Of a stretch of DNA of 28,582 nucleotides, positions 1 to 28,582 are shown piece by piece (position 1 is the stretch's first letter; each line of letters opens with the position of its first letter). The stretch is from Anthoceros angustus. Taxonomy: Eukaryota > Plantae > Anthocerotophyta. The notes beneath the pieces are model-generated. The model was not told the origin of the DNA and did no database searches. It saw only the letters and a list, made by a program, of their open reading frames with translations. The stretch covers positions 1 to 28,582 of the forward strand of contig VJWM01000374.1 in the NCBI GenBank assembly GCA_010909165.1, written 5' to 3'. Made by a program: the position numbers and the translations under genes.

Positions 1-384
1 CCGTCCTTAGTCTCCTCCTGGGGTTGTCTCTCCCACCACCCCAACCGCCCTCCAGGGTATACTACCGGACCCCGGCTCCTTCATCCTCGCCAGCCTCCGG
101 CCCCGACTCCCATCAGCCTCCGCCCCACGGCACTGACCCCTTAGTCCGGGCATCACCGGCGAGTGGCTCACCACGGTAGTCCGGCAGACTCACTGGTAGG
201 CTGGTCACCCCACCGTGGTAGGTTGACCCCTGTGAGGGTGGGCTTCCTCCTGCCTCCTCCGCGCCACCTTCTACCTTTGGCGCCACGCCTTCCTCGACTC
301 TCGATTCCTGAGTCCATTTCACCGATGGCCTCATCAAACGGAGGCCTCCGCTGCACCTCAGCTCCTTTCTCATCATCATGAGGA

Positions 385-524
385 TGTCTTTCTTAGCACA
401 TAGCGGTATGGCATCTTTCTCTCGTGTATGTGTCATCCTATCCTACACCTTGCTCATATGCTTATTCAGGGACAATCATGCAAGCTTTATTTCACTCAAG
501 TGAGGTTAGTTCACCCCAAATGGC
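385..524 (-). repeat. Terminal repeat B2 (3' end of element 1)
   Basis: 400-524 (ATAGCGGTATGGCAT...TTCACCCCAAATGGC) is a direct repeat of 1032-1158; 385-399 carries the TGTC terminus. Confidence 0.85.
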
Positions 525-1020
525 AAAACGCGTTGATAATCCTCCCAAGCACTCTCATGAAATGCGAAGCCAGCAATCGCTTTCGTTGAGACCTTAGGGC
601 AACCTCGCCGACACTCCTCTATCCTGTGCTCACACTCGCCACCCCAGCGGAGTCAGAGCTGCCCTCTCTCGAGGCAAACATCAGCAATCCGCCGCGCACT
701 GCGGATTGCTGCCCCTTAAAACCACCACCGCTTTCGGCGAACGCGAATCGATCACGGGTAAGGCGGACGTGGCGCCCGCCCAATCCTTGACGACACGTGA
801 CGGCCAGATCACCGAACCCCGACCGACGCCGTGACCGTGCCGCGATCATCAACCCCGCCAAGCCTGCGGTGACCGCGATCACTGGCGCTTCATGCTCTTA
901 TGCGAACATGCCGTGGCTCCACCTATGACTATACACATGCTGCTCCACATGCCATCATGCCTATCACCACACACATGCATCCTTTCTCCTACGCCCATAT
1001 CCACAGCGATATGCCATGAC
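525..1020 (-). repeat. LTR-like repeat A2 of element 1
   Basis: Direct repeat of 9185-9672. It is near-identical over the CTTCATGCTCTTATGCGAACATG...GATATGCC block (~888-1015 vs ~9541-9658) and more indel-rich elsewhere. Confidence 0.85.
679..721 (-). promoter_or_regulatory. Putative promoter in repeat A: TATA-like TTTTAA ~26-31 nt upstream of a conserved GGATTGCTGATG motif, with a 10-bp inverted repeat
   Basis: AGCAATCCGC (683-692) / GCGGATTGCT (701-710) form a perfect stem. The equivalent site in element 2 has TATAAA at 24269-24274 and GGATTGTTGATG at 24234-24245. The transcription start is inferred. Confidence 0.5.
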
Positions 1021-1031
1021 GGCGCGCGAAG

Positions 1032-1158
1032 ATAGCGGTATGGCATTTCTCTCGTGTATGTGTCATCCTATCCTACACCTTGCTCATATGCGCTTTATTC
1101 GGACAATCATGCAAGCTTTATTTCACCCCAAGTGAGGTTAGGTTCACCCCAAAATAGC
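1032..1158 (-). repeat. Internal repeat B1 of element 1
   Basis: Direct repeat of 400-524, lying between the extra ORF stop (1209) and A2. Confidence 0.85.
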
Positions 1159-1208
1159 CCCCAAAGTCGGCCACAATTGATCTTTGGTTGTGTGACGCTT
1201 TGGACACT

Positions 1209-2045
1209 TCAAATACCATAAAAGCGCCGGTAAAACCGTCTGAACATACCGTCACGCAGCTGAGGCTCTGAGGGTTTGTCATGTTGTAACCCTCCTGTTG
1301 CCAATAGGGCCGCCACTCGCCGCTCCTCGGGATCAAAATATTCATCAACCTGTGCCTTGCCTAATCGCTGCCGCTCCCTAGCGCGATGTCGAGCCAATAG
1401 TTCTTCCTCCTCATCACTGTCCAGCTCGGTCTTGACCCTGGGAAGTTGTGGCCCATTTAATCCGTTTACATAATATTGCTTTTCAAGTACCTGCCCGCAG
1501 AAATCCCCACATTGCTATTAAGGAGATACCAACATTCAGACGTTGGTTCGTCCCACTCTAACACTCCCGTCCTCAAACATGCAAACACCACAGCAGAAAG
1601 CCACAGGAGGTAGGGATGGCATCTGGCCCGCTCTTTCCGATGGGTATGAGCCATACCTTTAAAATTGCGCCGTCTGGCTTCTCTTCTTGCCGATACATGA
1701 GGAAGCCTTCCTTGGGCGATGATCGAAAACTTGGTGCATAAGCGGATGATGCTCCGGTTGCGAAAGGCATACAATAAGCGGGTCCACCACAGTTTTGTTC
1801 ATGCCCGACTGCGAGTTCAAAAGGTCCTTGTGATCATAGGAAAATTCTCCACCGGACATGTCTCATGATGCGATTCCACATATAACAAGAGGCTTGCAAT
1901 TCGAGAAAGGTTTCCGGCGTTCGAGCTTGCGGTTGATACTTGCGTACCAGCAGGTTGCGCCACTTGTCCTCCACGGTCGGTGCAGAAATTGAGGCTGCTG
2001 TGAGCCATCCTGCGGCGAGTCACACATGTGGACCTCCAAATCCAT
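1209..2045 (-). CDS. Conserved extra ORF of unknown function in the env-like position (~280 aa, frameshifted)
   Basis: Stitched from ORF-track fragments 1863-2045, 1817-2095, 1659-1859, 1573-1770, 1466-1774 and 1209-1397. It aligns with 24747-25578 of element 2 (EDKW..LVRKY, ETFLELQA.LLYVESHHETC, YDH[KR]DL, TGVLEWDE, NVGI, YVNG, EEEL.ARHRA, MFRRFYRRFYGI*). The start codon is uncertain. Confidence 0.7.
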
Positions 2046-2644
2046 GTCAACCCCGACAACGCCGCCCTACACTTGCACTTGTGTTTGGCCCTCAATGCTT
2101 CATAATCAAACTAGGGCAACTCGCCCCACCTCCGACTTCCGTAGCGTGATGGCGTCCGTCGTGGATGCCCCCACGACTCCGATTTCTCAGCAGTGCAATT
2201 GGTGCTGTACAACCCTACATCACCTCCTCAGATGCCCCTTTCTTAAGGCACCGTGATTACCACCAATCGGTTCAAGTGCACAAGTACACACCCGATTGTC
2301 AGAGGGCGCCTCTATGGCCTCCTCCGCGCCAGCAAAGAGGTATGCCCGTGCGGGCCTCCGTGGCCCGAGCACCTCAGCCAACACCGCACCTCCTTCACCC
2401 TACGTGCTGCCGCCTCGTGCACGCCGGTACAAGGCTGCTGGTTAATGTGAGACCATCTTGTATTCCTCGTGGCGTCTGCCACTCCTTCGCTTCCAAACCC
2501 CGCGCCCGCTATCGTGGCGTGTCGGTGCTTGTGTGTAACACACATGGGTTTTCATGCCATTTTGCCCTATGGCGCGTGTCGGCTTCGCGGAGGCGGTTTT
2601 AGGCGAGCCATTGCCGCCCCCAGCCATTTCTTGATCGCTGAACA

Positions 2645-2775
2645 TCACCGATGGCATTCCACGCCATCGGTATCACCGTGAGGCGGGGGCAAACCACGCA
2701 TGGTACCCTCGGTTACATTTGTCACAAACAACATCACCGGATCCGTGATGTGGCCACGATTCCAAGATAAATCAA
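2645..2775 (-). CDS. PHD finger C-terminal to integrase (frameshifted)
   Basis: Alternative frame reads VVCDKCNRGYHAW, followed by PPP..VIP.G.ECHR. This is the C4-H-C3 PHD pattern, and element 2 has the same domain at the same position. Confidence 0.7.
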
Positions 2776-2799
2776 GCGGAGGCTGCCGGGCTGGTTGAG

Positions 2800-3860
2800 T
2801 CACAGTGTCTAGGTTGGGCAAATGACATGGTGCTAAGTGGCGCATGTGCTCCTTGCACCGTCGCCCGTCCTGGCCCTCCAGCTCAATCACCCCTTGTTCA
2901 CCCACACTTACCACTCGTAAGATTAATCGTCCGGTGCTTACATCCAACGTACTCGACGGTCGGTGTTGTAGATACACAAAGTCCCCTTCTTCGAATTTTC
3001 TTGCTTTGGGCTTCCATGATCCTCCGCGTGGCGTGCCGGAGTTGGTCTCGGTGTTGTCACGCTAGTTGTCCATAGCCATTGGCATCACCCGCTGAAAAAG
3101 CTTCGCTCGCTCTTGCAACTCCGTGAGGCACTGCTCCGGACACTGTGCCCAATCCACCGGTCGAGAATAAGTGTCCGCCACAATATTTGGCATCACGGCA
3201 TTCCGTCCGAACATGATGTAGTACGGACTGAAGTTGCCCAGCGCTGCCTGTACGCTGATCCTGTACCCCAATGCCACGTATGGCAGTAACTCATCCCAAC
3301 ACTCGGGTTCGATCTCAGTGCAATACTTGCGGAGAGAGTCCTTGAAAGTTTGCACCAACCGCTCGGCCAACCCGTCAGCTTGAGGGTGGTCTCGGGAGGT
3401 GCGGCGATGATCTATCGACTTGATCCAACGGTGTTTGAAATTCACCTCGGCTTCGTTGCCTTGGTCCGTCAACACTTAGCGGCTCCCATATCGGCTACAC
3501 ACTGCGAAATGTCCTTGCAGTATACTTGGAGCTTCTAATCGGCAGAAAGGCCAATTCCACCCATTTCGAGAAGTGCTCTATCATCAACATGCAATGCTTG
3601 TTACCTTGCCTAGTTGTGGGTAGTTCGGGCATCAAATCGACAGACCACCTGAAAAACAATCCTCTGATGGGCAGCGAGTGCAACACCACGTCCTGGCTGT
3701 TGAACCTTGCTTTCACCGCATCACAGGCAGCGCATCGCGATACCACCTGCTCCACATCAGCATACATGCCAGACCAAAAGTATGCGGTTTTCAGCATGTG
3801 ATGCGTTCGCTTCACACCAAAGTGTCAGCATCTTGTGCACCTTGGTCACCAATGGTTTCC
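2800..3860 (-). CDS. pol: Retroviral-type DDE integrase (HHCC zinc domain, core, C-terminal part; frameshifted)
   Basis: HFGVKRTHHMLKTAYFWSGMYADVEQVVSRCAACD, WSVDLM, EHFSKWVE, LTDQGNE, HPQADGLAERLVQTFK, WDELLPYVALGYR, SPYYIMFGR. Confidence 0.95.
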
Positions 3861-4129
3861 TTTCTTCCACGGGTGGCACCTCTTTGTTGATCCCTCGATC
3901 GACTATGAGCACCTTACCATCCTTGTACGCATAGCGAGCAATTCTTCAGCTTTTGGAGAGATACTTCATCCAAATCAGGCACATATCCGTCTCTCAGTGA
4001 ATGGCGTGTTCGAGCTTCCATATGTCTCGAGTCCCTTCCGATGGTTCTGTCGTTCTCTTCTATAGCCATCATGCGAGCACATCTTGGCCTATTCGAGTCT
4101 TGTCGTGATGGTGTCGCCGCCCACACGGG

Positions 4130-4540
4130 TTCTGCGAGCCCATCCGCATTGAGATGCACTTTTCCTGCCCGATGCACAATCTGCATATCATATTCTGACA
4201 ACAACAAGGCCCATCTGGCGAGCTTCCCGCTCAGCTTCATGTTAGTCATTAGCCAGTGCAGGGGTTGATGGTCTGTGACCAGCTGAAAGCTTCGACCAAA
4301 TAGTACACTCTAAAGTGCAGGACCGCCCACACGGCAGCGAGACATTCTCCTTCATAAGACGAGTAGTTGGCCTCTGCGGTGTTGTTCGATCTACTTGCAT
4401 ATGCCACGACCCTCTCTCTTCCTTCCTCATCCGCCTGTGCGAGCACGGCCCCTATGCCTACTGCACTCCAGTCCGTATACAAAACGAAGGGCCTTTCGAA
4501 GTTGGGCCTTCTAAGCATTGGCCTTTCTGCCAGCTGCTCT
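4130..4540 (-). CDS. pol: RNase H domain (Ty3/gypsy type)
   Basis: PFVLYTDWSAVGIGAVLAQ, VVAYASRS, NYSSYEGECLAAVWAVLHFRVY, KLARWALLLSEYDMQIVHRAGKVHLNADGL. Confidence 0.95.
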
Positions 4541-4599
4541 TTTAGCTCCTGCCATGCTTGCTCTGCTCCTGCCCCCAGTGCCAATGGACATCTTTTTTA

Positions 4600-5260
4600 A
4601 GCAACTCATACAACGGCTTGCAGGTGCCGCTCATGTTTCTTATGAACCGGCGATAATAGTTCACTAGCCCTGTGAATGCCCTCGTGGCCACATCCTTGGG
4701 TCTAGGCATGAGATTCCTTGCACCTTGGGTGTGGCAACACTCCTCGGTACAATTTGTGCCCCAAGTAGTCGATCTCTCGGTAGCAAATTTGCATTTTCTT
4801 GGATGGGCTTTCGGCGGTTGTGTTTGTAACATCTCCAAGTGCTCAAGGTGTTCTTCCAAACTATCGCTGAACACCAGGATGTCATCGATGTAGCACTTGA
4901 CAAACGCCAGTCCTTGCAGCTCCAAGTCTGCTACCCGTTGAAAATATATGGACGCGTTCTTTAATCCGAATGGCATGGTCTCCCATTCCCATAACTGCTC
5001 CTTGCCCCAAAATGCCGTCTTACACCTGTCTTTCTCCTCAATCACAATCTGGTTGAATCCAGACCGAAAGTCAAGTGTGGTGAAGTATTTGGCTTCGCCG
5101 ATGGCGTCAAAGATCTCGTCAGGGGTAGGCATGGGATACCGTTCCATGGGCGTTATCTCATTCAGGGCTCGATAATCCCCACACATTCTCCTGTCCTTCC
5201 ATTCCCCGTGTTCATCCTTTTTGAGCGGAAGCACAGTGGCTGCAGCATATTGCGAGGTTG
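4600..5260 (-). CDS. pol: Reverse transcriptase (Ty3/gypsy type)
   Basis: ORF 4542-5318: RMCGDYRALN, YFTTLDFRSGFNQI, KTAF, MPFGLKNA, catalytic YIDD (4881-4892), FTGLVNYYRRFI. Confidence 0.97.
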
Positions 5261-5677
5261 ACTTCCTGATCGACCAGCCTCTGCCAGCTCCTGGCACCGT
5301 TTGTCCACGATGTCCCACTCCATGGGGCTCAACTTATGTCTTCGTCGGAACACGGTTCATCGGTGGTGGTGGTGATCTTGAACTTGATGCGATCATATCG
5401 CCCCAATTCGGCCCAACTGAACGCAAAGGTACCTCGGTTTCTGAGTAGCATTTCCGAATCTTTTGCTGCTCAGCCGGTTGCAGCTCTTCACATATTTGCC
5501 ACTCATCGTCCGGACTTGCGTGGTTCTCTTCCGGTAGCAAAGGGGCAGCCACTGCTGTATGAACGGCTCGCTCTGGCTTCTCGCGTGAGGATCAGATCTA
5601 TCTTTGTCGTCACATATGAGCAGACGCTCCCTGCTGTCCTTTTGACACATGGCCAGCTGTATGGCCAACCCTGTAGT

Positions 5678-6564
5678 CAGCAACCATTGCATACAAGTGA
5701 TATCAAAGGCTTGCCCGATCAATCTGCACCGGAAAGATTGACACGCGGTGCCTGCACCATATCCCATGGCCCGCTCTCGTTCGGTCACCGTGGGCTCCCC
5801 AACTTCATTTCCCTCGCTGTCGCACCATGCCTCCTCCTCCTTTCCTGAACGCATAGGATTGGATGGTCTTGACAAGCGTGGGCCAGGCCCTTCTTGGCTT
5901 TCCAACCACATTCACCGGGTAATGAGGCAGTTTGTCCCTCTTACGCACTTGTTGTGAACATCGCCCAGGCTCCAGGATGTCATCTACACAACGCTGTTCT
6001 GGTACCGTCAACTGCCGGTGATGCCTCAGGTTGGTCACACTACCCACATTGGTCCAGAAACTTCGTACCCGGTGTGCATATGAGCCGGTTTGCACAGCAT
6101 CGACAATGAACTCTTCTCCCAGCCAACCTCTGAGTTGCGCATATTGTCTTCTCACACACTCGCGCTTGTCAAAAGCACCACACACATTTTCAAGCAGCAG
6201 GGGGTTGGTCTTACACTTCACCGCAGGATCGAATGACCTCCGCCAGTTCCATGCCATTGCAGGCCACGCCCAGCTTGGGAGAAGGTCTTGCACTCCCATC
6301 CTGCGATCAACATGTCTCCGTACCAATGACCCCAGGCGCCGGCTTACCCACGGTCGGATGTCCGCGGGCCTTTGCTCACGCGACCTTTAATGGCTTCCCT
6401 GCTCAACAAAGTGGGGTTCTCCTTTGTAGCGAATGATCCTGGCCTTAGCCACCGCGCGTCCTTTCATCCAGCTCGACACACGTGTACTTCACGGTGAATA
6501 CCACTTCTTAGTGCGCTTCCAACCACTGCGATCCCGTCGAGCACAGTTCCATCAAGTGAATGCC
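5678..6564 (-). CDS. C5 cytosine DNA methyltransferase domain, DNMT3-like, embedded in pol between protease and RT (frameshifted)
   Basis: Motifs in canonical order: I GIHLMELC..G (~6564-6530), II VKYTCVELDE, III ADIR, IV DMLIAGWECKTFSQAG (Cys at 6290-6292), VI LLLENV (6183-6191), VIII DAVQTGSYAHRVRSFWTN, IX EPTVTERERAMGY, X RCRLIGQAFDITCMQWLL. Motifs VIII-X resemble DNMT3 (DAKEVSAAHRARYFWGN; TEMERVFGF; RQRLLGRSWSVPVIRHLF). Confidence 0.88.
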
Positions 6565-6849
6565 TCGTCCATCCGCTGCCCATTGAATCACCTTGTTGTT
6601 GATTCGCAGCCTAGCCGGGTTCAAGGCCGGCATCTTCGGCAGGCTCTTCTCCGGACATAAGCGGGTCGCCGGCATTAGAGGTCCCTCGTCGGTGTCTTCG
6701 CATCACCGCCCTGCTGTGGAGTTCTTTTGATACACAGGCGGGCACTTACCTCACGACCCTCACCGTGACTCTTCCCTCATTAATTCCTCGGTCTCTTCCC
6801 AAACTTGGCTCTATGGCGCTTCCCTCTGCGTGTCGACCACCGCGATGTC

Positions 6850-7240
6850 TTTGCTGGTTCCTCGGCTCTTTTCATGCTAAGTGGAATCCTGGCCATGTGC
6901 GAGAAATCCCCATCTCTCCACCGAGGTCGGTAGAATGCCACTGAATGTAGTGGATCCACCCCCATCGCCGGTCCATGCGTGGCGTCAGCTCCGAGTAGCA
7001 CATCATAGTTGCTGGCACTTGATACCAGGCAATGAACCTCAATGACCGAAGCATCCTTGGTGCCTGGTTTGAACTCTATGCGGATGGGGTCTCGAGTGAT
7101 CCCCATTACTTGTTCTTTGGTGCGCCCGGCGTAGTGATCGCACCTCAGGGGCTTCAACTTTGTCCCCATACGGTGGAGTGCCTTACACTTTCGGGCACCA
7201 AGCAACTTGGATCCGCACTTTTATGTCTACCGGCACATTC
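6850..7240 (-). CDS. pol: Retropepsin-like aspartic protease (frameshifted)
   Basis: The C-terminal hydrophobic-Gly motif NYDVLLG is in ORF 6780-7205. A degenerate active-site region (VD..ADP) lies near 7215-7235. Position between gag and RT fits. Confidence 0.65.
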
Positions 7241-7699
7241 GAGGGCGAACCCATTCCGTGACACGGTTGTCCACCTTAGCGACTCCCCTTTGCCTCACCG
7301 GTGGCTTCGGATGTTCACCACACAAGCTAGTGAGCCCGGACACCACCTCGACTCCGGCATATGCTTTCTTCATCCAATCCTGCATTGCCGACCTGAATGT
7401 TTGTGGCTTGACTCCCAGCTCGCGCAAGCTGACCATGGGCACATCCAACGCTTTGTCCAACAACTCTATGTCCGGCGACTTCCTTTCTGGGGGTTTGAAG
7501 ACTTCGTGATCTTCCAGTTGTCTAAAGGACGCGGGCATTTTGAGTTGATTCCTAGCCCCGGCCCCCTTTCTCTTGATACCCTCTCCCATGTCAAGGTGAT
7601 TTTTCATACCGGTGTTTACCCCCATGGTCATTAGTGCGTACACCTCCTGATCTGAATCGTACTCTTCACAAGTGGCATTCGCGACTCCTGGTGTGCTGG

Positions 7700-8760
7700 C
7701 ATTCATGGCCAACTGCTCCTGGAGGCGATGCACCTCACTAAGCAGTGCCTTCCGAGTATAGTTCATTGATGATTTCATCTTATCACCCTGCCGATCCCCA
7801 ACTCCTTTGGGCTTGAGTTGGGTGACCTTGCCAAGCCGTGTGGCCCATTACAGCCTGAGTCACGGTTCCTTCTCCTTCGCTCCACCACTCGATACCACTT
7901 TCGGATGCTGCATGCGCACCTCCACCGGAACACTTCATCATGGCCTTGGCATTCACGCCTTTATTGTGCGTTCCCTAATAGAGCCTCTCGGTTATGCTCC
8001 CTTGTCCATTGAGCGGTCCTCCCATGCGCCTTGTGGGCATTCGCAGCATGCTGATGCCCTTTGACGAGATTGTGCTCTTCCCAATATGCACTAGTCACGG
8101 CATCCCCTTTCATGACCCTCTCTGCCATTTCATAGGCCTGATCCAGCTCATAATCCGCACCATGCATCATGTGCAGAAAGTTGGCAATCACTCTTCTCTC
8201 TTCCCGGGAGGCGGCTATGTAGATTTGGGCGGCTTCCCGCATCGTCTTTACGCGAGTGTCCTTTACCAATTGCCTCAATCTTAGATACGCCGACCTGAGT
8301 GGTTCATTGGGCTTGATGACGAATCTCGACAACTCCTGGATTTTCTCTATGGAGGACACTGGGAACATTTCCGCGAACTTGTTGAACATCTCATCCACCA
8401 AAAACGTAATGGCGGCCTTGCGTCTGCTGGATGAGCGTCCCTCTTAGTCTCCTTTAGCGTCCTTTTGGCTCACATGCACCGTGCCAAGGGACCGTGCATC
8501 TTGAGAATAATCAGTCCTTACAATCAGCATGGAGTGCTTCTCGGCCAAGAAGTGCTCATTTTCCTCAAGGCCATCTCGGAGTGAACTCCGATTTGTACTT
8601 GAGGACCATCATCAATCGTCCCAGATTTCTCTTGAAGTCAATAGCGACATCTGTAGTCGTGAAGACGTCATTTTACTAGGTGCTGGCTCATATTCCATCC
8701 TGATCTCTCCACCGCTGTCTTCAAATGCGATGGAGCGAATGGGGCTTCTACTCCACTCAA
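7700..8760 (-). CDS. gag: gag-like capsid protein (frameshifted; boundaries approximate)
   Basis: ORF 7961-8401 (KIQELSRFVIKPNEPLRSAYLRLRQLV...YELDQAYEMAERV) has the retrotransposon Gag pattern L..F.Q..NE....Y..R...L and lies 5' of the protease. Confidence 0.7.
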
Positions 8761-9181
8761 ACTGACCGGCGCTCCTGCGACCCAAGGAATGTTGGGCTGG
8801 GGCTCTGGCGCTTCACCGGGGTGCTTTCGTTTTATCCAACACGTAGAATACCATCACCGTGTCAATCTCGCCCCCTGCGTGACACTATATGGCATTCGTC
8901 CAAAGTTAGTGTTGGTCCCGCCGTTAGTCGATCCGCCGGCCAGCCAATTTATCCACCACTTCTTCCTCCCGGCCTTTACGGGTAAGAAGGTTCTATCTCG
9001 CCAAGAGGCCCCGCTAACTCTGATGGAGCGGCAGCATAAAACAGCGAATAATCCACGATGCTCTGCAAAGCCCACCACCGCTTGGGCTTGGCATCCGTGG
9101 GCCCCCACGGCTCGTCGATGGTGATAAGGCGCTCATGGTCTCACTATGGGTGGTCGTATGTCGGGGACTCGGGATTGCTAA

Positions 9182-9672
9182 TGTAAAACGCGGTCGGTAA
9201 TCCTCCCAAGCACTCTCATAAAATGCGGCTTGCGTATCGCTTTCGTGAGACCTTGGGCCTCGCCGACACTCCTCTATCCCAAGCTCACACTGCCACCCCA
9301 ACGGGAGCTGTATGGCTGCCCTCTCTACTGGGCAAACATCAGCAATCCGCCTCGCATCGCCAGTTCGCCGCCCTCAAAACACCTACACCTTTCGGGCGCA
9401 TCGATCACGGTGACGGACGTAGCCTCTATCCCGGTTGACACCGTGACCGCGCCGCGATCACCGAACCGACCGGCGTGGCCGTGACTGCGTGATCCACGAA
9501 CCCGGTAGCGCCCGTGACCGTACCCGCGATTACCGCTGCGCTTCATGCTCTTATGCGAACATGCCGTGGCTCCACCTATGACTATTCACATGCTGCTCCA
9601 CATGCCATCACCACACACATGCATCCTTTCTCTTACGCCCATATCCACAGCGATATGCCAGTTGCCATGACA
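9182..9672 (-). repeat. LTR-like repeat A1 (5' end of element 1)
   Basis: Direct repeat of 525-1020, bounded by TG (9182) and GACA (9672). No copy of repeat B lies on either side. Confidence 0.85.
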
Positions 9673-10200
9673 AGGACCCAATGTCCTCCTCTTGGCCAAA
9701 CGCAAGATCTCATTGTTGGCCTTCAAAATTCTTTTGTGGAGGTGGGCCCCCAAGCTATGATATTGCATTTGGAGATCATCAATCTCCGTGGGCCACTCTC
9801 CATCTTCACACCTACCTTTGGCGTCCTTGAGGTGGCTTCAATTCCCCCACCTTGACATGGAGGGTCACATTCTCTCCCTGCTGTTTGGCTAGCCAATTTT
9901 ACTGAAGGGCATAATCAGCCCAAACCTTCGTCCTTACTTACCAGCATTCTATGTACCACTTTCTTGTGGTACTCCTCTTCCTGGGACCTTTTCCTTCCAA
10001 GTCCTCTATTAGTTGAGCAAGCCCTTCCCTCTCCGCTTGCCAAGCATCTTTCCGCTCCGGCTCCGGTCTGAGTCTCTTGGGGTAGGTCGCCTTAGCTCGA
10101 AAAGGAAGTTGTGGCGCCCAAAGCGCACTTTGCACCTTTGGATGGTCCGCCACTGGCCACACAACCCTAGATTTTGTGCATCATTCACAAAATCCTAATC
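9673..10200 (-). pseudogene. Host sequence interrupted by element 1 (continues at 384 leftwards); probable decayed retroelement accessory ORF
   Basis: Removing element 1 and one AGGA joins ...KANNEILRLAKRRTLGP to HDDEKGAEVQRRPPFDEAIGEMDSG... in frame. There is weak resemblance to ORFs at 28123-28563. Confidence 0.4.
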
Positions 10201-12875: not shown

Positions 12876-13305
12876 CAAGTCTTGATGGGAGTAGCAGCCC
12901 AATTCTTCCCAATTGCTATGTGCAACCAAGTCTCGATGGCAATAGCAGCATAATTCTCCCCAATTCTTTTTGGAATTTGTGCTATGTGGAGCCAAGTCTC
13001 GATGGAAGTAACTCAATTCTTCCCAATTCTTTCCGGAATTTGTGCTATGTGGAGTCAAGTCTCGATGGAAGACTCAATTCTTCCCAATTCTTTGGAAGTT
13101 GTGCTATGTGCAACCAAGTCTCGATGGTAGTAGCAGCACAATTCTCCCCAATTCTTTCTAGAATTTGTGCTATGTGCAACCAAGTCTCGATGGCAATAGC
13201 AGCACAATTCTCCCCAATTCTTTCTGGAATTTGTGCTATGTGGAGTCAAGTCTCGATGGAAGTAGCAGCTCAATTCTTCCCAATTCTTTTGGAATTTGTG
13301 CTATG
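12876..13305. repeat. Minisatellite, 7 copies of a ~50-66-bp unit
   Basis: Unit (C/T)CAAGTCTCGATGG..TAGCAGC.CAATTCT.CCCAATTCTTT..GGAATTTGTGCTATGTG starts near 12876, 12926, 12992, 13055, 13114, 13180 and 13246. Confidence 0.9.
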
Positions 13306-13461
13306 TGTGTGTCTGTGGATATAATTAGTCTAATATGTATGTGGCTGTGTGCTAGGTTTTCTAGTGTGGGCGGCAAGGATTACACAATCCTGTTGGTCTC
13401 TTGCTGTTGTTTGCCACAAAATCCAGCATTGGAAGGACACACTCTTGTGGACAGACTCATC

Positions 13462-16400: not shown

Positions 16401-18682
16401 AGTGTTGCTAATTAGACACTTGTTTGATATCATGCACATTGGAAAGAACGTTAGTGAACAAATTATGAGGCACATTTGTGGGGAGTTTGAAACCCTATGA
16501 GTCGAGAGATCTCGAACTATCAAATACCAAGGTGAATGGTGGCCCAAGGAGGCCCCAACCTAAACCCAAGCCCAAGGGTAGGGCTAGGGCCATGGGCCAT
16601 GGGCCATGGGCCATGGCAAGCCCCAAGCCAAGTATGGGCCTAGGCCTAGGCAATCAAGGAAAAGGAAGAGAGGACAAGATGATGCATTGATGAAGGAACG
16701 CGGTGCATACGGACTCCAAAGACCTTGGGTTCTTGGACATGGCACTAACTATTCTTATCCTAAAGCATTGGAGAAATTGAAGAGAAGGGTTTGCAACATC
16801 CGTATGCCCGGGTATGGGTCCAACTTGAAACGTTGTTTTAAGAAAGGGACACGAGAGACAATTTCACAAGTCCCATGATCATCATCATTTGTTATGTGAC
16901 ATATGGCCAATTGCCTTGAGAGGGTTGATACATCCACATGTGCATAAGGCTATATGTGATCTCAACTAATGCGTTGGCTTACCGCAAAAGAAATTGTGAA
17001 GGATGAGATTCTCGCTATGAAGGTCAAAATTGCGAGGTGATGTGCATTTTGAGAGAGAGTTTCCTACAACATTTCGACAAGCCGTCCATGTCATTATTCA
17101 TCCGTGCGAGGTTGAATTATGTGGGCCCACACGCTATCGTTGGATGTATTTTCTTGAACATATGAAAGTGCTAAAGAACCTTGTACGACAAAAAGCTCGA
17201 AGGAAGGAAGCATGGCTTTAGGATATCTAGCACAAGAGACAATGTTTTACTCTTGAATTCTTTGGAAATATCCATAATGCAGCTCCACGGATGTGGACAA
17301 TGAAAGAAGATGTTACTCAAAGTGGGAGTTGTTACAAGGATATGGAAAGATAAAGCGCCGATGTGGAAAGGAGTCAAGTGAGGAAAGTGATATTAGAGAA
17401 CTCGGAGTGGACTAAGCAATGGAAAGAAGTATATGATGACATCAAGATCGCCTTTTGTGGAGTGGTTAATCGATGAGGTGGAAGCATCTAAAAGGGAACG
17501 CATTAGAAATATATGGAAAGGAGGTGGTTGCACTTGTAAGAGGGCCATTTGAATCATGCGTTCTTATAGCATGATGTGGGCATATGGACATCATATCTTG
17601 GATCTTGAGGAAACAAACTTGTGATAGCATCATAACACAACTATATACATTTCTATGTATTGAAAACAGGTGACCGAACCCATTGCAGTAGCCTATGTTG
17701 GAACAAAGGAGAGGATTTATGAAGTTGATTTTGGAGTTACTACAAATATAAATGTGCTCAAGGTAAAGTGGTTCCACACCGGAATGAGGATAGGAGAGAT
17801 GACTCCACCGGTATGGTCATGTTGAATCCAAACAAAACGTTATCTCAAGAAAAGTCGAAAGACGAACCATTCGTTATGGTATCTCCGAAATTGGAGCAGA
17901 GCAAAATACCCAAAAATCTTGGAAACTTGTAGGTACAACATGTAGTAGAATGTGACGATTTTGATGGAAGACATGTCCATGAAGTGCTGGAATACAAGGA
18001 TGACATGGAAGACGAGGATATCGATAGAAGAAGTGGAAGATGATCATGAGCATATCGATGGAACTAGATATGTAGTGGAAGATAACGATGAAATGGAAGA
18101 TGAGGATATCGATGGAATATACGTTGTTGAAGATGACATGGAAGATGAAGATATTGATGGAAGACATGTAATCAAGACGTCGACATAGAAGATGAGGATA
18201 TTGATGAAAGACATGTAGTCGAAGATGAAGATGACATGGAAGATGAAGGAAGATGAAGAGGAAGATGATGGTGATAGTGATGATGAGGATGACAAGGAAG
18301 ATGCGGATGATGAGGAAGACGAGGATGCGGTAGAGAGGATATCGATGAAGAGACTACGGAAGATGAGGAGGGTAGCGAAAATGAAAAGGACATGGAATCA
18401 AAAGACGAGGACGCCGACAAGGAAGAAGAGGAAGATGAGGACAACAAGGAAGAAGAGGAAGATGTGGACGAAAGGGAAGATGAAGAGGAAAGTAAAGATG
18501 AGGATGATAAGGAAGATGAGGATGAAAGCAAAGATGAGGATGAAAGAAAAGATGAGGATGACAAGGAAGATGAGGATGAAAGCAAAGACGAGGATGACAA
18601 GGAAGATGAGGATGAAAGCAAAGATGAGGATGAAAGCAAAGACGAGGATGACAATAAAAAGATGAGGACAACAAATGAATGA
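13462..18682 (+). pseudogene. CACTA TnpD-like DDE transposase (Tnp2/Transposase_21, DUF4218- and DUF4216-like regions), spliced, frameshifted
   Basis: YKSIHACPND, VKVLRYFPLIPRLKQMF, LKALLMWTMHD, ACPKC, FWELPYWE, LLIRHLFDIMHIGKN, GYGSNL, EVELCGP.RYRWMYF.E.MKVLKNLVRQKAR. Likely GT-AG introns lie at 13665-13912, ending at 14981, and at ~16282-16402. The N-terminal start and acidic C-terminus are inferred. Confidence 0.88.
17950..18680 (+). repeat. Asp/Glu-rich low-complexity coding-like repeat (GAAGATGAGGATGA... units)
   Basis: ORF 18392-18682 is mostly D/E/K. Purine-rich tandem units follow the DUF4216-like region. Confidence 0.85.
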
Positions 18683-19129
18683 GCTTTTATAGATATCATC
18701 TTACGTACATCGATGAGGAATTGAGAATGAGCGATACGTCATGTATGCGGTGTTAGAAGGTTTTGAAATTTCAAAATGTGATACAATGCTTGGGGTTTGA
18801 GTTTGGTCTTAATTATAACATATACAAGGCTTGCTTATAATGTGTGAATTATTTTTACGATGGTGCGGGACTCGAACCATGAGCCCCTTATAATCGAACA
18901 TATATACTTCTAGTTCATTTCTGTCTGTAATGCCTTTGTCATTAAAGTGTTGATCTAGTTTCCTCCGGTACTTTTGCCAACGATAGCATGTACATCCTCG
19001 ACTATTCCCACAGCTTGTCCAGCCTTTCTTTGGATAGACAAAGATAGTCAAACCAAACCAAACCCAACCCAAGCAAATATTAGCCTTCCTCATAGCAAAC
19101 ATCCTTTCCCGAGCTTCGAGCTGGCCTTA

Positions 19130-22075: not shown

Positions 22076-22388
22076 GCTCGAAAGGTAAGCATGTACGAAC
22101 ATGTACCATCGGGCAAGGCGCACTTGTGGGCATAGAGGTGGTACCGCTCACAATAAGAACACTAAAGAAAATGCTAAAGAGCGTGACGTACTAGTATTAG
22201 AGCACTAGCGGCCCCCCTCTCAACTTTTTCCCTCTCCATGCCAGACTGTGTGTAAGGGCTGGGATTAATGGAGTGCGAAGCCGAGTGGCACGCTCCATTT
22301 TGAATGGACGCGCTCATCATGCCCCCACAAAATAACCCCAATCAAATTTAAAATAGCCCTCCCCGCCTCACATTTTGAAGAAAAATGC

Positions 22389-23211
22389 TTTACAACGTAA
22401 TCTACAACAAGGGAATCACGTCATCAATCGTTGTAAATGGCCTCCTATCATATTTTTGTGATTAATAACAATAATAAAGAGTTTAAAAAATAAAGAACAC
22501 ATTTTGAGAAAATTACTTTACAACGTAATCTACAACAAGGAGCCATGTCATCAATCGTAAATGGCCTCCTATCATATTTTTGTGATTAATAATAATAATA
22601 AAGAGTTAAACAAATAAAGAACACATTTTGAGAAAAATGTTTTACAACGTAATCTACAACAAGGGAGCCATGTCATCAATCGCTGTTGTAAATGGCCTCC
22701 AATCATATTTTTGTGATTAATAATAATAATAAAGAGTTTTGAAGAAATAAAGAACAAATTTTGAGAAAAAGGCTTTTACAACGTAATCTACAACAAGGGA
22801 GCCACGTCATCGCATGCTGTTGTAAATGGCTTCCAATCATATTTTTGTGATTAATAATAATAACAAAGAGTTTTGAAGAAATAAAGAACAAATTTTGAGA
22901 AAAAGGCTTTTACAACGTAATCTACAACAAGGGAGCCACGTCATCGCATACTGTTGTAAATGGCTTCCAATCATATTTTTGTGATTAGTGATGTTAATAA
23001 AGATTTTTAGAAAAATAAAGATCAAATTTTGAAAAAAAGGCTTTTACAACGTAATCTACAACGTGCCAGCCATCAATCCGTTGTTGTAAATGAGCACCCA
23101 AAAGAGTGCCACATCATCCAACTAGAAACCCCGTTGTAAACCGAGTCTTAAAACTTGCCACATCAGCGAAACTCAAACCAATTTACAACGGAGGTGTTTA
23201 GACGTTGTAAA
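22389..23211. repeat. CACTA right subterminal tandem repeats (~124-134-bp unit) bearing inverted TTTACAACG/CGTTGTAAA motifs
   Basis: TTTACAACGTAATCTACAAC starts at 22389, 22517, 22641, 22775, 22909 and 23043. Further motif pairs occur at 23182 and 23203. Confidence 0.92.
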
Positions 23212-23264
23212 GATTGGGGGATTTGCAAAAGGGGTTTTGTAAAACACCCCTCTCCCTAGTAGTG

Positions 23265-23979
23265 ATAGCTTCAGCTGATTTTGGTACCAGTTGCATCTTG
23301 TGCTGCGCCTCTTCTCGGCCCTCCGTATGCTGGACAAACCCTAGCAACCGTTCCAATTGGCTTTCCTCATCAGTTAAATGTCCGTCCATCATGACTCGGA
23401 GCATCGGTACCTCAAATTCCACTGGCATAACCGGCGAATGCCCATAGGTTAAGTAATACGGAGTTCGTTGCGTGGTCACCTTCTCCGCCGTCTTGAAAGC
23501 CCACCGCAGCTGGTAGTATCCTATGCGCGTTAACCGTAAGCTTATTTAGGATGCGACAGATAAGTCCGTTGGTCTTCTCCGTTAACCCATTGGCCTTCGG
23601 GTTGTATGGTGCCGCCTTGCGATGAGTTATGCGAAATAGTCCGTCATTGCGTATCACATCATTGAGGAAATGAGTTCCCCTATCGCTACCAACCGCAGCG
23701 GACACCAGCAGGATGATGTTCTCATAGAGGAACTTGCCATCGTGCTTGTAGAGTCTGGCCCTTGTGTGCCTCCACCCACCGTGCGAGTCTGCTGCCAAGA
23801 TGTACCTCTTCGTGTGCTTCATCAGAGGTCAGTATCCAACGTCGATACCCATTTATTTTGAACGCTAGTGCCATTATGGGCACCAGCGGCCATTGGGTCG
23901 TTGGGGTAGGCTTCCCGATCCGCTGACAAGCATCACACCGCTTTAAAAACTTGTGCGTCTCCCCAAACATAGTGGGCCA
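23265..23979 (-). pseudogene. Integrase fragment of a different Ty3/gypsy family, cut by the CACTA end on the left and element 2 on the right
   Basis: WPTMFGETHKFLKRCDACQRIGKP, SDRGTHFLN, HRKAAPYNPKANGLTEKTN, TPYYLTYGHSPVMPVEFEVP. Confidence 0.9.
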
Positions 23980-24746
23980 TGTCGCGCCACAGCCGCATAG
24001 CAGGCATGGACATACATGTTATGTCATCAAAAAGTTTCAACCACTTCCTACGGGACTCCGTGACCCACACCCTTAACTATATGAGCTGTCACTACCTCCG
24101 TATCACAACGCTTGTCAATGGCAAAAATCCACTCCGTTTGTAATGGTTCTCCTCCTATACACACCCATTTACCGAATCACACACAAGATCTGTAAAACGC
24201 TTGGGATGCATGCATTTGTTCTCTTGAATCAGACATCAACAATCCGCTCCCAATGACGGATTGTTGGATTTATAGCCTACGCCGCGCGATCTTAATCACC
24301 GGCCCAAGAAGGCTGTGACCACGCCCGCACGCGCCGGAAGATCTTCGCCGCTGAGCCTTAATTACGCTTGTCCGTATTCTGATCGTATGGCTCATGTAGC
24401 CATGATGCCATCCTACCTCTATACTCATGCCATGCATCACGCCATCACATTCACAGTATTCGCATGCAGTCATGATTCATGCACCTCTTATCCCTACGCA
24501 CTTATATTGGACACACACACGTCATCACACCCAAACCCTACCTGCCTATCCATACCTCTACATGCCATGATACCGCCCGCCGCATGCATGGACGACATGT
24601 TATGTCATCAAAAGTTTCAACCACTTCCTCGGGACTCGTGACCCACACCCTTAACTACATGAGTTGTCACTTCACTGACGCCACAATGGCCCCGCCAAAG
24701 TTGCTGCTCAAGAACTGGTTGCGCTGTGTAGGCACCACTTTGGCAC

Positions 24747-25578
24747 TTATATGCCATAGAATCGTCGATAAAATCTCCGGAACATGCCCTAAGCTCGTGG
24801 CTCGACGGTTTGTCATGCTCCATTCTTCCGTATAACAACGCCACACGCCCGATCTTCCGGGTCAAAATACTCATCCACTGCGCTTTGCCCAACCGCACGC
24901 CTTTGCTCGATGTCGGGCCATGAGCTCCTCTTCTTCATCATCACCGCTGGGTTTCACTCTAGGCGTGCGCTCAAACCCATTCACATAATCTTGCGATGCA
25001 CCGAGCCCTAAGAAAATCCCCACATTGTCATTGACTGCATACCAAGATTCCAAAGTGGCCTCATCCCATTCCAACACTCCTGTGCAAGGCAAGCAAACAC
25101 CCTATAAAAAGCTCGTGGGTAACCAATGGCAAAACGCCCGCTTTCTCTCTATGTAAATGACTTAGCCACACTTTCGGACTTCTCGTCAATCACCGGCTTC
25201 TCCTTGTGCACATCGTGAACCCTTCGGCCAATGATCAAACACCGATGCATGACAGATGATGTTCCAATTTTCTAATGCCCCTCACAAGAACTCAGTCCAT
25301 ACGGCTTTGCCTGCTCATGCCCCTCGCTCGCCACCTCAAAAAGATCCCGATGATCATAAGGAAAACTTTCAATGTTGCAGGTCTCATGATGTGATTCTAC
25401 ATACAGCAAAAATGCTTGTAACTCCAGAAATGTCTCGGTCGTTCTCGGCTTGCCGGTGATATTTCCTTACCAAAGGCGTCTTCCATTTGTCTTCCCATGG
25501 TCTGTCTGAAAACTGTGGAACACTAGTGCTCATTCTGCGAAAACACGACTTGCAAGTGTGGTCCGCTTCCATATCCAT
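24747..25578 (-). pseudogene. Second copy of the conserved extra ORF (frameshifted)
   Basis: MDMEADHTCKSC...PWEDKWKTPLVRKY, ETFLELQAFLLYVESHHETCNIESFPYDHRDL, TGVLEWDEATLESWYAVNDNVGI, EEEELMARHRAK, ending MFRRFYRRFYGI*. Confidence 0.7.
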
Positions 25579-26410
25579 GTTAGCACTGTTAAGCCCAATG
25601 GGAATCCTTCACTTGATACTCTCACAATTGGAGGACGGATACCTTCAGTTGTTGGTCGAACAATCAAATGGATTGATTTGATTTTGAGATGACTGCTCAT
25701 TCCGACTCAAGCGAAAGTGTCAAGCTTGCCAATCAACACATGCCCGATTGAAATGAATCCCAACTTTGTCTCACGGCAAGTGGCTTGCCGCTTATGCAAA
25801 GAGATCATTATGCACGCTCCTTTGCTCGTGCCCGGATGCTTGGCGCCGCAAACACCCTAGCACTTGCTCTTCACGTCTCGCTTCCGTGGTATCTCCTCAC
25901 CGCTCTCACTTGAGTCGCAGGGTCCCTATCCACAACCTACAATACATATGCACCGCAACAACTGGATGATCACCGGCGCTCCAACTACATGATGCTCCAT
26001 GCTTTATTGCTCCTTCCCGCGCAATAATCGCTGTTGATGAACCGAATCAGCCGCCTTCCTTATTCCTCCACACGCGTGCCGCAATTGGCCTCCTCCCTGA
26101 CATGCACTGTGACAATTCACTGTCGCTTACCTTCCATGCACCGCCCACGATGATCGATGCACTCAACACCACCAATTTCCCCAAGCAAATCGCCGACCTT
26201 CTCCAAAGAACAATCCTCCTCCCCGCTAGTTCTTTGTTTACACTGTACTTCTCGCCTTGCCGCTACATCAGACGCCTCACACAACCCGGTATGTATTAAA
26301 TAAGTAACGGGCTTTTATAGGCCTACCTTCTTATTGACGCCTTCGACACCCACACCGTGAGTGCGTGCTTTACTTAGCCCCCATTTCCTTCGCCCTAACT
26401 TTTCCATTAT

Positions 26411-26546
26411 ACACTTGTGACAAATTCTCCTTCTCCGAATTGCCTTCAATGGTACGAAGACAAAAGACATGATGTCCTTGGTTGCATTGATCACATAATA
26501 GCATCGCTCAGATCGCTGATTTTGACCATGTATTCGCATGGCAGTC
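26411..26546 (-). pseudogene. PHD finger of element 2
   Basis: MLLCDQCNQGHHVFCL in one frame, then LKAI....ICHKC in the next. Confidence 0.75.
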
Positions 26547-26599
26547 AACAGTGGCTTCCATGCGCGTTGTATCAAGATCTGGCATGGGGCCGATGTCGA

Positions 26600-27260
26600 T
26601 GTGTTCCTTTGCATCGGCTACCATCTTGCCCTTCCAACTCGATGACCCCTTGCTCACCAACGCTCACCACTGCAAAATTAACTCCTGCGGCTCACGTCCA
26701 AAGTGCCGAAGGACGATGTTGAAGATACAAGTCACCTACTGAACTTCCGCCTTTGGCTTCCATGATCCTCCTCGTGAATGCGCCTCACCGATCTCTTGTT
26801 GCGATAGCGATTGTCCATTGCCATGGGTATCACTCGCTGTAACAACTTGGCCCTATTTCGTAACCTCGAGCAACATTCATTCACATTTTGTGTCCAATCC
26901 ATCGTTTGGAATACGTGTCACCACTATGTTGGGTAACACAAGATTCCCGCCAAACATGATATAATAAGGAGGTTGCTGTGGCCGCTCAGACATGATTCTC
27001 AGGCCCAAGGCAACATACGGTAGCAACTCATCCCAACAATTAGGCTCGACTGCGGCAAGATTTAAGAGCATCCTTGAAAGTTTGCACCAGCCTTTCGCCA
27101 AACCGTCATCCCTCGAGGATGGTCCCGGATGTGCGCCCTCGCGATCTATCAAACTCCGATCTAACAACGCTTGGAACTCACCGAATTCATTTCCTTGATC
27201 GCCAACATCTCCGCATGCCTTCCATACCCGGCCAAAACACAGCTGTAGGAAGCCCGTGCG
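26600..27260 (-). pseudogene. Integrase core and C-terminus of element 2
   Basis: DQGNEF, CWDELLPYVALG, PPYYIMFG, ELEGQDGSRCKEH; collinear with 2800-3500. Confidence 0.9.
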
Positions 27261-27781
27261 TGAGCGTGAAGTCCTCGAAGCCTCCTGCCTCACGCCCCCG
27301 AGTTCTCCGGGCCTGCCTACCGCTTTAACGTTTGCTCACGCCGATTTGAGCAAGGGTCCCTGCGCTCGTCCCCGCACACCACCACACGTTAGGGTCGTCA
27401 CGTGACTGGACCGCCTCTCGAGTCGTGCTTGCTGCTGACTCGGGACTCACGTTAGCAAGAAGACGCACAAGGGTCCTGCAAGGAAACGCGGGTGATCAAC
27501 ACAAGAGAAAGATACTTTACTAGAGCAACTTCGCCCCTCTTATACTACGCCCAAGGTCATGCCTTTATTACACTCCTATTCGAGCGGGTGGCACTCGGTG
27601 CCCCAATCACCGCCTACCATCTTCACGCCCCCTATCTCCGCTGGCCGGGCGGTGGGCCTGGGAATGCCCTTGGTTCCGCGCCGATGACCCCACCTTGCTC
27701 TGCTGCGGGCGCACCCAATCGGATGATCCGCGAGGCGGGACCCTTCCCTTCCCGAGACCTCGCGTTAGTCACGGTCCGACA
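27261..27781 (-). repeat. Possible LTR of another retroelement truncating element 2
   Basis: Minus strand starts TGTCGGACC (27781), with a purine-rich GGAGAGGAGGATGGTGG ~10 nt upstream and a TATAAG box near 27539-27544. No second copy is in the window and the left boundary is unresolved. Confidence 0.4.
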
Positions 27782-28582
27782 ACCGCGGTAACCACCATCC
27801 TCCTCTCCTGGCCTTCGAGTGGGTCCCCGCCTGTAGGGACCACTCTATTGACCGCCTCCCGAGCACGCCGGGAATCCTCTCCCGAGTCCGGACCTCGGGT
27901 CCGGCCTCGACTCCGGGTCCGATCGGAGTCGGTCTTATTTCCAGTCCGACCTCGTGGTCCGGCTCCCGGGTTCGGACCTCAAGGTCCGACTCCATACTGT
28001 GGTCCGGCCCTCAAGTCCGGACTTCAATCTTGACCCATCGTTAGGGGCCTGTCTCGCCACCGGCCCCTTCCCTCGGGTCCGGCTATCCTCCTCACCTCGG
28101 GCCCTTGTCCCTATCCTCCCCGTCATTGCGGCGGACTTACCTCAAGGTCACATGGCCGGCCCCGCCTCCTCGAGGCTCTTTCCACCGCTGCCTCATCACC
28201 AAACAAGGCCACCAAGGCCCCAGCGCTGTCCCCATGCCCTTCTTCCCCTTCCACTCCCTCTGACCCTTCCAGGTCCGGCCTGCAAGGGCACCAGAAGCTT
28301 CCAACGCCTTGAGGAGCTCGGCGTGGTAGTAGGCAAAATCCGAGTCGATTTGTTGGATTGCCTCCTCCACATGCGCCCGGAAAGCACCCGATACCCTTCG
28401 CCATAGGTGCTCTCCAGCTGATGTCCGGCTTGCCGTCCGCCTCCGCTGTGTCCTCGGATGTCTCCTCCTCTTTCTCCGAGACCTCCACTCCTCGTCCTCC
28501 TCTTAGAGGACTCCTCCTCCTCGGAATCCAGAACTCCTTCTTCTTCTTCTTCTTGCCCCCCACAGGTAGATTTCTTCTTCCT
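27782..28582 (-). other. GC-rich, low-complexity coding-like fragment (K/R/E/G/P-rich), probably the 3' internal region of that retroelement
   Basis: Overlapping open frames at 27765-28563 and GGTCCGGA-type short repeats; no recognised domain. Confidence 0.3.

Follow-up and report, generated by a model that had tools for sequence, protein, structure and literature searches.

In textbook long terminal repeat (LTR) retrotransposons, the ends at which the element is integrated are set by the primer sites of reverse transcription. Here, we present an analysis of an element in contig VJWM01000374.1 of Anthoceros angustus (GenBank assembly GCA_010909165.1) that raises the question of how integration ends are specified when a retrotransposon with a DDE integrase carries split direct repeats instead of two complete LTRs. 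The element, referred to as element 1, lies in the 28,582-nt stretch analyzed here (positions 1 to 28,582 of the forward strand; the window), and an earlier note on this DNA had described it as a Ty3/gypsy element with the layout A1, genes, B1, A2, and B2, in which a single internal junction could define both ends. Our analysis supports with high confidence that element 1 is an old, broken Ty3/gypsy copy of a green-lineage group that carries a cytosine methyltransferase in pol and in which every full-length integrated copy has the structure A-genes-B-A-B. More tentatively, we suggest from the arrangement of the DNA that what integrates is a canonical LTR-genes-LTR cDNA in circularly permuted form, opened at an internal palindrome; the probability that we assign to this mechanism falls somewhat short of even. 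Identity and mechanism taken together make up the explanation that we consider best overall, and we regard the chances for and against it as balanced.

Results

Split direct repeats bounded by a target site duplication

Coordinates are positions in the window, and element 1 is read on the minus (sense) strand, on which the order is TCCT, A1, coding region, G-rich tract, B1, an 11-nt spacer, A2, B2, and TCCT. A slash within a sequence marks the boundary between two repeats.

9673..9676, minus strand: target site duplication (TSD), 5' copy; TCCT on the sense strand (AGGA on the plus strand), the same four bases as at 381-384
9182..9672, minus strand: A1, the 5' repeat; starts TGTCATGG and ends TTTTACA, with no B sequence after it
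1154..1165, minus strand: G-rich tract, candidate polypurine tract (PPT); TTTGGGGGCTAT, directly upstream of B1
1032..1153, minus strand: B1 core; ~93% identity with the B2 core
1021..1031, minus strand: 11-nt spacer between B1 and A2; CTTCGCGCGCC, a degenerate form of the junction that is the palindrome GACAG/CTGTC in relatives
521..1020, minus strand: A2, the 3' copy of A; 83% overall identity with A1
385..520, minus strand: B2; its 15-nt tail (399-385) ends in GACA, and two AATAAA motifs lie inside
381..384, minus strand: TSD, 3' copy; AGGA on the plus strand (TCCT sense)

Element 1 begins with TGTC at 9672 and ends with GACA at 385, and these termini, together with the TCCT duplication, correspond to the TG…CA ends and 4- to 6-bp TSDs of Ty3/gypsy elements. 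The two complete, matching LTRs that such elements have at their ends are absent; instead, A stands alone at the 5' end and B-A-B is found at the 3' end, i.e., the split direct repeats A1…B1-A2-B2 of DIRS, PAT, and Ngaro elements. TOC1 is another of these split-repeat tyrosine-recombinase retroelements. DIRS, PAT, and Ngaro elements integrate without a TSD, in contrast to the 4-bp TSDs in the window and in relatives. A1 and A2 are ~98% identical over the first ~170 nt, and the CpG-rich repetitive middle part has diverged. A2 lacks the first T of TGTC, and the last 15 nt of B2 have no counterpart after B1, where the different 11-nt spacer is found. The length and identity of the repeats are far above chance. 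A single 4-bp TSD is weak evidence alone and is corroborated by the TSDs of relatives. When one of the TSD copies is taken out, the flanks can be read through the insertion site as one open frame of 125 codons, which fits the boundaries of element 1 as called; a paralogous empty site was not found within the window.

Our alignment bears out the A1…B1-A2-B2 layout with TGTC and GACA termini and a perfect AGGA TSD outside A1 and B2 that the earlier note had claimed. It also agrees that an end at the A2 boundary (521) would yield no TSD, because TTTG (CAAA on the plus strand) would come after it, and that the integrated unit includes B2, spanning A1 through B2 between 4-bp TSDs. The repeats had been placed correctly, with the A2/B2 boundary now at 521/520 rather than 525/524.

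The layout recurs in a second element and in relatives

The window contains a second element with the same 3' structure, inserted in a foreign retrotransposon.

23980..28582, minus strand: element 2, a diverged relative of element 1 with 65-69% nucleotide identity; its 5' end is beyond the window
~24671-24580, 24579-24573, 24572-~24094, and ~24093-23980, minus strand: B1', spacer, A2', and B2' of element 2, ending in GACA
23201..23979, minus strand: foreign retrotransposon integrase fragment hosting the insertion of element 2; Integrase_H2C2 match

Element 2 is nested in another LTR retrotransposon, likewise degenerate, where it interrupts the H2C2 zinc-finger region of the integrase; the Integrase_H2C2 match resumes at profile position 35, exactly at the end of element 2.

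The closest database relatives of the window element share 58-63% identity in the reverse transcriptase (RT), and the named ones are from Closterium, Calypogeia, and Haematococcus; close copies of the window's own family were not found in protein databases. In a metagenomic family with an RT 57% identical to that of the window, one locus (L003) shows the order PPT-B-A-B, and a scan with the A/B junction of this family yielded >120 contigs. These include at least 37 independent preB-B-A-B ends, four full-length copies whose 5' end is A only, and ~13 independent solo A·B units. Perfect 4-bp TSDs flank 8 of 13 solo units, and three of the four bases match in 3 more; two full-length copies (L100 and L107) also have perfect TSDs. 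An A-only 5' end is present in the window, in L005, L007, L093, L100, L104, and L107, and in Closterium. The young copy in Closterium sp. NIES-68 (L136:9765-17458, BQMA01002100.1) has the order GGTC-A1…purine tract-B1-A2-B2-GGTC, with A1 and A2 99.6% identical, B1 and B2 100% identical, and a perfect GGTC TSD. The RT-anchored copies all terminate in …CACGACA at the flank, and L007 is inserted in a satellite array that continues on its other side. Comparing the ends of copies, a check that the earlier note had suggested, thus gave A-only 5' ends, B-A-B 3' ends, and 4-bp TSDs outside B2 in the metagenomic family and in Closterium, with RT-anchored copies being mostly A-genes-B (see Discussion). 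We conclude that the A-genes-B-A-B layout is a heritable lineage trait of green-algal and plant-like elements.

These data bear on the idea that the layout is a local accident, i.e., an assembly duplication, a nested solo LTR, or a rearranged ordinary element. Element 1 is old and heavily mutated and its B1/A2 spacer is aberrant, as this idea would have it; however, the idea is refuted because the layout recurs: element 2 has it, as do dozens of independent contigs drawn from several assemblies and a Closterium copy with near-identical repeats. Moreover, the recurrent copies have TSDs outside B2, and the layout has been published for Klebsormidium. We therefore consider a local accident next to impossible; an assembly duplication of B2, the concern raised in the earlier note, is specifically contradicted by element 2, the at least 37 metagenomic copies, and Closterium.

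Some loci in the metagenomes have further repeat arrangements. L060, L089, and L094 each contain two preB-B-A-B units ~2.1 kb apart in the same orientation; they are probably one locus in three assemblies and represent either a truncated element beside a full 3' end or a tandem arrangement. A subfamily (L022, L036, L037, L039, L044, L045, L058, L066, L083, and L099) has a 17-18-nt duplication of the A end, which reads …TTCAATTCTTTC(A/T)TTCATTCAAT directly 5' of the A/B junction. The Calypogeia locus L002 was rejected as a comparison copy, being a degraded fragment without repeats, and Logan contigs L001 and L004 were rejected as end-bearing copies, both lacking element ends.

The coding region is that of a Ty3/gypsy element with a methyltransferase

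The coding region of element 1 is disrupted by many stops and frameshifts, and element 1 is an old, dead copy. The following remnants were recognized.

7964..8443, minus strand: possible gag remnant, a candidate with a Retrotrans_gag E value of only 0.21
5654..5936, minus strand: C-5 cytosine DNA methyltransferase (DNMT) remnant; 35-38% identity, E 1e-10 in tblastn with the DNMT open reading frame (ORF) of L007 (PF00145)
4545..5333, minus strand: RT; RVT_1, E 3e-21
3917..4596, minus strand: RNase H in two frames; RT_RNaseH_2, E 4e-31; RT_RNaseH, E 1e-22 and 3e-9
3065..3824, minus strand: integrase, H2C2 zinc finger and DDE core; Integrase_H2C2, E 7e-12 (3824-3498); frameshift near 3498/3475
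2705..3004, minus strand: region after the integrase homologous to the PHD ORF; 44% identity to residues 1-103 of the L007 ORF

The pol order RT-RNase H-integrase, the Gypsy-type RNase H, and the DDE integrase are those of Ty3/gypsy elements. Consistently, the matches to RVT_1, RT_RNaseH_2, RT_RNaseH, and Integrase_H2C2, together with an alignment to rve, confirm that element 1 is a Ty3/gypsy element with a DDE integrase. In this alignment, the integrase core pieces are 48-49% identical to the rve-annotated ORF of L004 (E 3e-54), the residues D, D, and E are conserved, and the aligned motifs are RWSVDL, LTDQGNE, and PQADGLAER; Pfam did not detect rve in the window pieces because the core is split. 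A tyrosine recombinase (Phage_integrase) had no Pfam match in window pieces or intact relatives.

The DNMT remnant is situated between protease and RT, and Pfam gave no DNA methyltransferase match on the window pieces. Element 1 thus combines a Gypsy pol with A-coding-B-A-B repeats, as KnitGypsy-Dnmt3 does (PMC5890265, Fig. 4c), and has the cytosine methyltransferase in pol as a remnant only; this gene is intact in L007, L135, and L136. The PHD finger of the L007 ORF (L007:12583-12978) comprises residues 82-126 (PF00628), so that only its start is covered in element 1, and Pfam did not detect a PHD finger in the window pieces. No match to a chromodomain was found; in relatives, the PHD finger occupies the C-terminal position of the integrase. 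L135 is an intact relative of 2327 aa with zf-CCHC, DNMT, RT, RNase H, and rve; its contig contains no repeats and is probably cut at both ends. In L001, the closest Logan relative, a DNA_methylase match (L001:2640-3131) is called on the strand opposite to RT, which may be a calling artifact in a degenerate copy.

A candidate self-primer pairs with the sequence after A1

A1 presumably holds the promoter, R, and U5. Three short motifs in and directly after A1 are relevant to the priming of reverse transcription.

9372..9379, minus strand: TATA-like motif in A1, placed by position; TTTTGAGG, with TTTTAAGG at the aligned site of A2 and CTATAAAT in the A repeat of element 2
9337..9348, minus strand: candidate transcript 5' end and self-primer; GGATTGCTGATG, complementary to 9183-9172
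9172..9183, minus strand: candidate self-priming primer binding site (PBS) across the end of A1; CATTAGCAATCC

The TATA-like motif lies 31 nt upstream of the primer-like motif, and the transcript start of element 1 is placed from motif position. A TGG-type tRNA PBS is not present after A1 of element 1. In relatives, the candidate self-primer and PBS are exactly complementary over 13 nt (L007), 11 nt (Closterium), and 11 nt (Haematococcus), which was matched by 0 of 500 shuffles in each case. The motif lies ~30 nt after a TATA or TATA-like box where this is recognizable and 126-177 nt before the end of A in the three families. The sequences of the self-primer and the PBS differ among these families, while pairing and positions are kept, i.e., they covary. 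A purine tract (G8, G9, or 27 nt) is located at or a few bases before B1 in relatives and not before A2. Compared with the Ty3/gypsy scheme, the PBS-like site after A1 is thus strong in relatives and weak in the window, and the purine tract adjoins B1 and not A2. B as a general terminator was ruled out; among the families, AATAAA is found in the B of the window only.

The internal junction is a palindrome that contains both ends

The B1/A2 junction reads GACA-NN-TGTC in 66 units, and the ancestral NN is GC, which gives the palindrome GACAG/CTGTC; in Closterium, it extends to the 14-bp palindrome GCGACAG/CTGTCGC. The integrated ends lack the central G and C of the junction, as would follow from removal of a single nucleotide at each 3' end. 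De novo formation of the 2-nt spacer in each cycle was ruled out: the variants GT, AC, and AT differ from GC by transitions within CAGCTG, in keeping with decay of methylated cytosine. At the A2/B2 junction, the PBS-side end of A is fused exactly to the PPT-side start of B. An origin of the A/B junction by splicing was ruled out, as there are no GT…AG boundaries. B1 is closer to B2 of the same element (0.083) than to B of other elements (0.127), each A1 is closest to its own A2, and the B alignment contains no columns specific to B1 or B2. Together, these relationships argue that both copies are remade in each cycle, as LTRs are.

A related element of Haematococcus lacustris (GCA_030144725.1; L137:19840-20700 and L138:9243-34122) has the PHD finger and lacks DNMT. 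It shows the order PPT (G9), a 56-nt B, the palindrome GTGACAG/CTGTCAC, and A, and no B2 was seen in L137 or L138. It forms an array A-int-B·A-int-B·A, which is head-to-head with an inverted copy exactly at the PBS-side ends of A (…TTACATT/AATGTAA…). No TSD was found around this inverted dimer in a complex array, the outer flanks being different (ATGC vs GACT).

Other repeats in the window

Positions 19940-22100 contain satellite-like arrays with 20/24-nt units around AATGGCGCCCAA(C/T), embedded in a ~1.4-kb duplication (19152-19735 vs 20579-21148, 84-93% identical); their motif TGGCGCCCAAC resembles a tRNA-Lys-type primer binding site. At 17940-18700, 9/18-nt tandem repeats (GAAGATGAGGAT-like) are rich in purines, with GC skew and AT skew both very high, and may encode an acidic Glu/Asp-rich repeat. 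Two further tandem arrays are present, one at 22370-23090 with a 134-nt unit repeated ~six times and one at 12910-13330 with a 63-66-nt unit repeated ~five times.

Discussion

A PBS after A1 and a purine tract before B1 imply that canonical reverse transcription would give a B·A LTR. We propose that this lineage uses canonical reverse transcription of the Tf1 type. Transcription would begin in A ~30 nt after the TATA box, and the first 11-13 bases of the transcript would fold back on the PBS directly after A1 to prime the minus strand, as is known for the self-priming elements Tf1, Sushi, and Tcn1 (PMC6317226). The plus strand would start at the purine tract at or a few bases before B1, such that the LTR made by reverse transcription would be B·A and the cDNA (B·A)-genes-(B·A). 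The sequences recognized by the integrase would then lie inside this LTR, as a head-to-head palindrome (…GACAG/CTGTC…) at the B/A boundary, and not at the LTR ends. Joining of the A end of the cDNA to the B start, by end joining or template switching, would create the exact A2/B2 junction. Finally, the integrase would open one palindrome, trim one base from each 3' end, and insert the product with a 4-bp TSD, as is conceivable given that the integrases of prototype foamy virus (PFV) and human immunodeficiency virus type 1 (HIV-1) cut palindromic LTR-LTR junctions (PMC1180852, PMC1905944). The outcome would be a normal provirus in circularly permuted form, with the left B now at the right end; the palindromic B/A junction and the exact A2/B2 junction support that the integrated copy is such a permuted B·A structure. 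Later recombination between both B copies or both A copies would generate the A-genes-B and solo A·B forms, to which cutting at two palindromes would be an alternative, direct route.

Several observations weigh against this proposal. If a free circle has two identical palindromes, the integrase should cut both equally well, and A-B-A-genes-B should arise as frequently as A-genes-B-A-B; however, the form A-B-A-genes-B is absent (0 of 7 A/PBS sites and 0 of ~95 classified units that contain A/B), and a directional step is therefore missing from the model. The model also needs the sequences after B1 and at the end of B2 to be identical at insertion, but in element 1, CTTCGCGCGCC after B1 is unrelated to the B2 tail GTGCTAAGAAAGACA. 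The self-primer of element 1 pairs over 8 nt exactly or over 12 nt with one G·U, which is weak alone and is matched by 73 of 500 shuffles. The RT-anchored copies are A-genes-B in three of four loci (L007, L010, and L013), and either form may therefore be the primary product. The metagenomic set was picked via the A/B junction, and imprecise junctions consequently cannot show up in it. Lastly, all steps of replication are deduced from DNA.

One alternative is template switching of the DIRS/PAT type. Here, a transcript from inside A1 to inside B2 would have its ends restored via the internal B1/A2 bridge, and the DDE integrase would open the new B2/A1 palindrome of a circular or full-length cDNA. 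Because the newly made junction is the one that is cut, this scheme accounts for A-genes-B-A-B alone; moreover, the layout is identical to that of PAT, Ngaro, and SymbioDIRS (PMC5890265), the internal junction contains both ends plus the base lost from each at integration, and B2 of element 1 has AATAAA signals. However, AATAAA in B is not common to other families, an inherited 5' part of B2 should build up columns specific to B1 or B2 of which none were found, and the PBS after A1 and the purine tract at or before B1, which the canonical scheme needs, would have no or only a partial role. On balance, we consider template switching of this type unlikely. We find it still less probable that A-genes-B is the transposing unit and that A2-B2 represents another unit with an internal deletion, which integrated together with the first, head to tail, out of a concatemeric cDNA, e.g., one with three palindromes cut at the first and third. 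In favor of this reading, three palindromes in one cDNA would account for precisely the three observed forms and leave no route to A-B-A-genes-B; in addition, the three loci named above are A-genes-B copies that end properly in GACA, and solo A·B units have TSDs of their own. Nevertheless, the same forms arise by ordinary repeat recombination, no concatemer was observed, and A-genes-B has no 3' copy of R, which leaves the first strand transfer unsupported.

The earlier note had suggested that both strands are primed at the B1/A2 junction, with the minus strand copying B1 and jumping to B2 and the plus strand starting from A2, such that the cDNA ends would come directly from the reverse transcriptase. 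The part of this idea by which the single junction defines both ends is reasonable, since both terminal sequences stand head to head there with one extra base each, and integrated ends that are short of the junction by one base are as expected for unprocessed cDNA ends. Priming at the junction fared less well. In none of four families is there a purine tract at the end of B1 or a primer complement at the start of A2; rather, the conserved pair of self-primer and PBS is placed in A1 and directly after it (in four families, weakly in the window) and the G tract at or just before B1, and the jump from B1 to B2 is not forced by a template end. Accordingly, we regard junction priming as very doubtful. 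A further possibility is that the left LTR is cleaved and the free ends are then joined.

Returning to the permuted B·A cDNA, it would follow that, if the integrase ends lie as a palindrome inside the LTR, every provirus is a circular permutation of LTR-genes-LTR. It is possible, and we put this a shade lower than the permutation itself, that the lineage keeps both integrase recognition ends as a built-in palindrome in the LTR and must integrate from end-joined or circular cDNA opened there. If true, this would be the first retroelement with internal att-palindrome cutting as the obligatory integration route, and it would be a natural bridge between LTR-type and DIRS-type replication. In this lineage, primer sites and integration ends are out of register: B·A lies between the PBS and the purine tract, and A…B between the integrase ends. 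The lineage thereby represents a natural experiment on the formation of integrase substrates. It also bears on circular or end-joined cDNA as a productive intermediate, a role long debated for retroviruses. On the practical side, LTR-finding software will mis-annotate this lineage because paired LTRs with TSDs at the LTR edge are expected, and dating by LTR divergence is misleading unless A and B are treated separately. With a DNMT and, in relatives, a PHD finger, the biology of the lineage touches on the epigenetic interplay between transposons and hosts.

The closest known system, and the only example of the group described so far, is KnitGypsy-Dnmt3 of Klebsormidium nitens, in which Gypsy domains were reported together with repeats of the DIRS type (de Mendoza et al. 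2018, Nat Commun 9:1341, PMC5890265, Fig. 4c); it provides an integrase element with this layout, of which the earlier note had not been aware. Like the window element, KnitGypsy-Dnmt3, whose host is a streptophyte alga, has a Gypsy-type pol with a Dnmt3-like methyltransferase and A-coding-B-A-B repeats. The window element matches it in pol composition, down to the DNMT remnant, as well as in repeat structure and is therefore another member of this kind; its RT is only 58-63% identical to the nearest database relatives, supporting that it represents another family. Unlike KnitGypsy-Dnmt3, the window copy is degenerate, and the two are likened by the published description and not by sequence. 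Neither a mechanism nor a TSD, PBS, PPT, or junction palindrome is reported in the 2018 paper (PMC5890265). In the literature searched, the name KnitGypsy is in no other paper, and a search on split direct repeats, integrase, and Gypsy returned nothing else relevant. The layout itself was thus already noted in 2018; the present analysis shows how widely it occurs, with several hosts among streptophytes and other green algae, describes how the cis elements are arranged, and puts forward a mechanism that can be tested.

As the earlier note had recognized, the split direct repeats A1-genes-B1-A2-B2, with an internal junction that contains both ends, are shared with the tyrosine-recombinase retroelements of the PAT, Ngaro, and DIRS type, including SymbioDIRS-Dnmt3. 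Those elements encode a tyrosine recombinase, have no DDE integrase, and integrate without a TSD, whereas the window element combines a Gypsy-type RNase H and a DDE integrase that has an H2C2 finger with TG…CA termini and 4-bp TSDs. With Tf1, Sushi, and Tcn1, the last of which is present in mosses and club-mosses (PMC6317226), it shares the Ty3/gypsy affiliation, the lack of a tRNA PBS, and, strongly in relatives but weakly in the window copy, a putative transcript start complementary to the sequence directly after the 5' repeat; however, these elements have ordinary paired LTRs and a chromodomain, while relatives of the window element have a PHD finger and DNMT instead. Finally, the 2-LTR circles of PFV and HIV-1 have a similar head-to-head palindrome of integrase-recognized ends that is cut to two processed ends (PMC1180852, PMC1905944), as we suggest for the lineage of the window element. 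The retroviral palindrome forms only after circularization and is a side route at best; in the lineage described here, each genomic copy already contains it, at a site flanked by the purine tract and the promoter.

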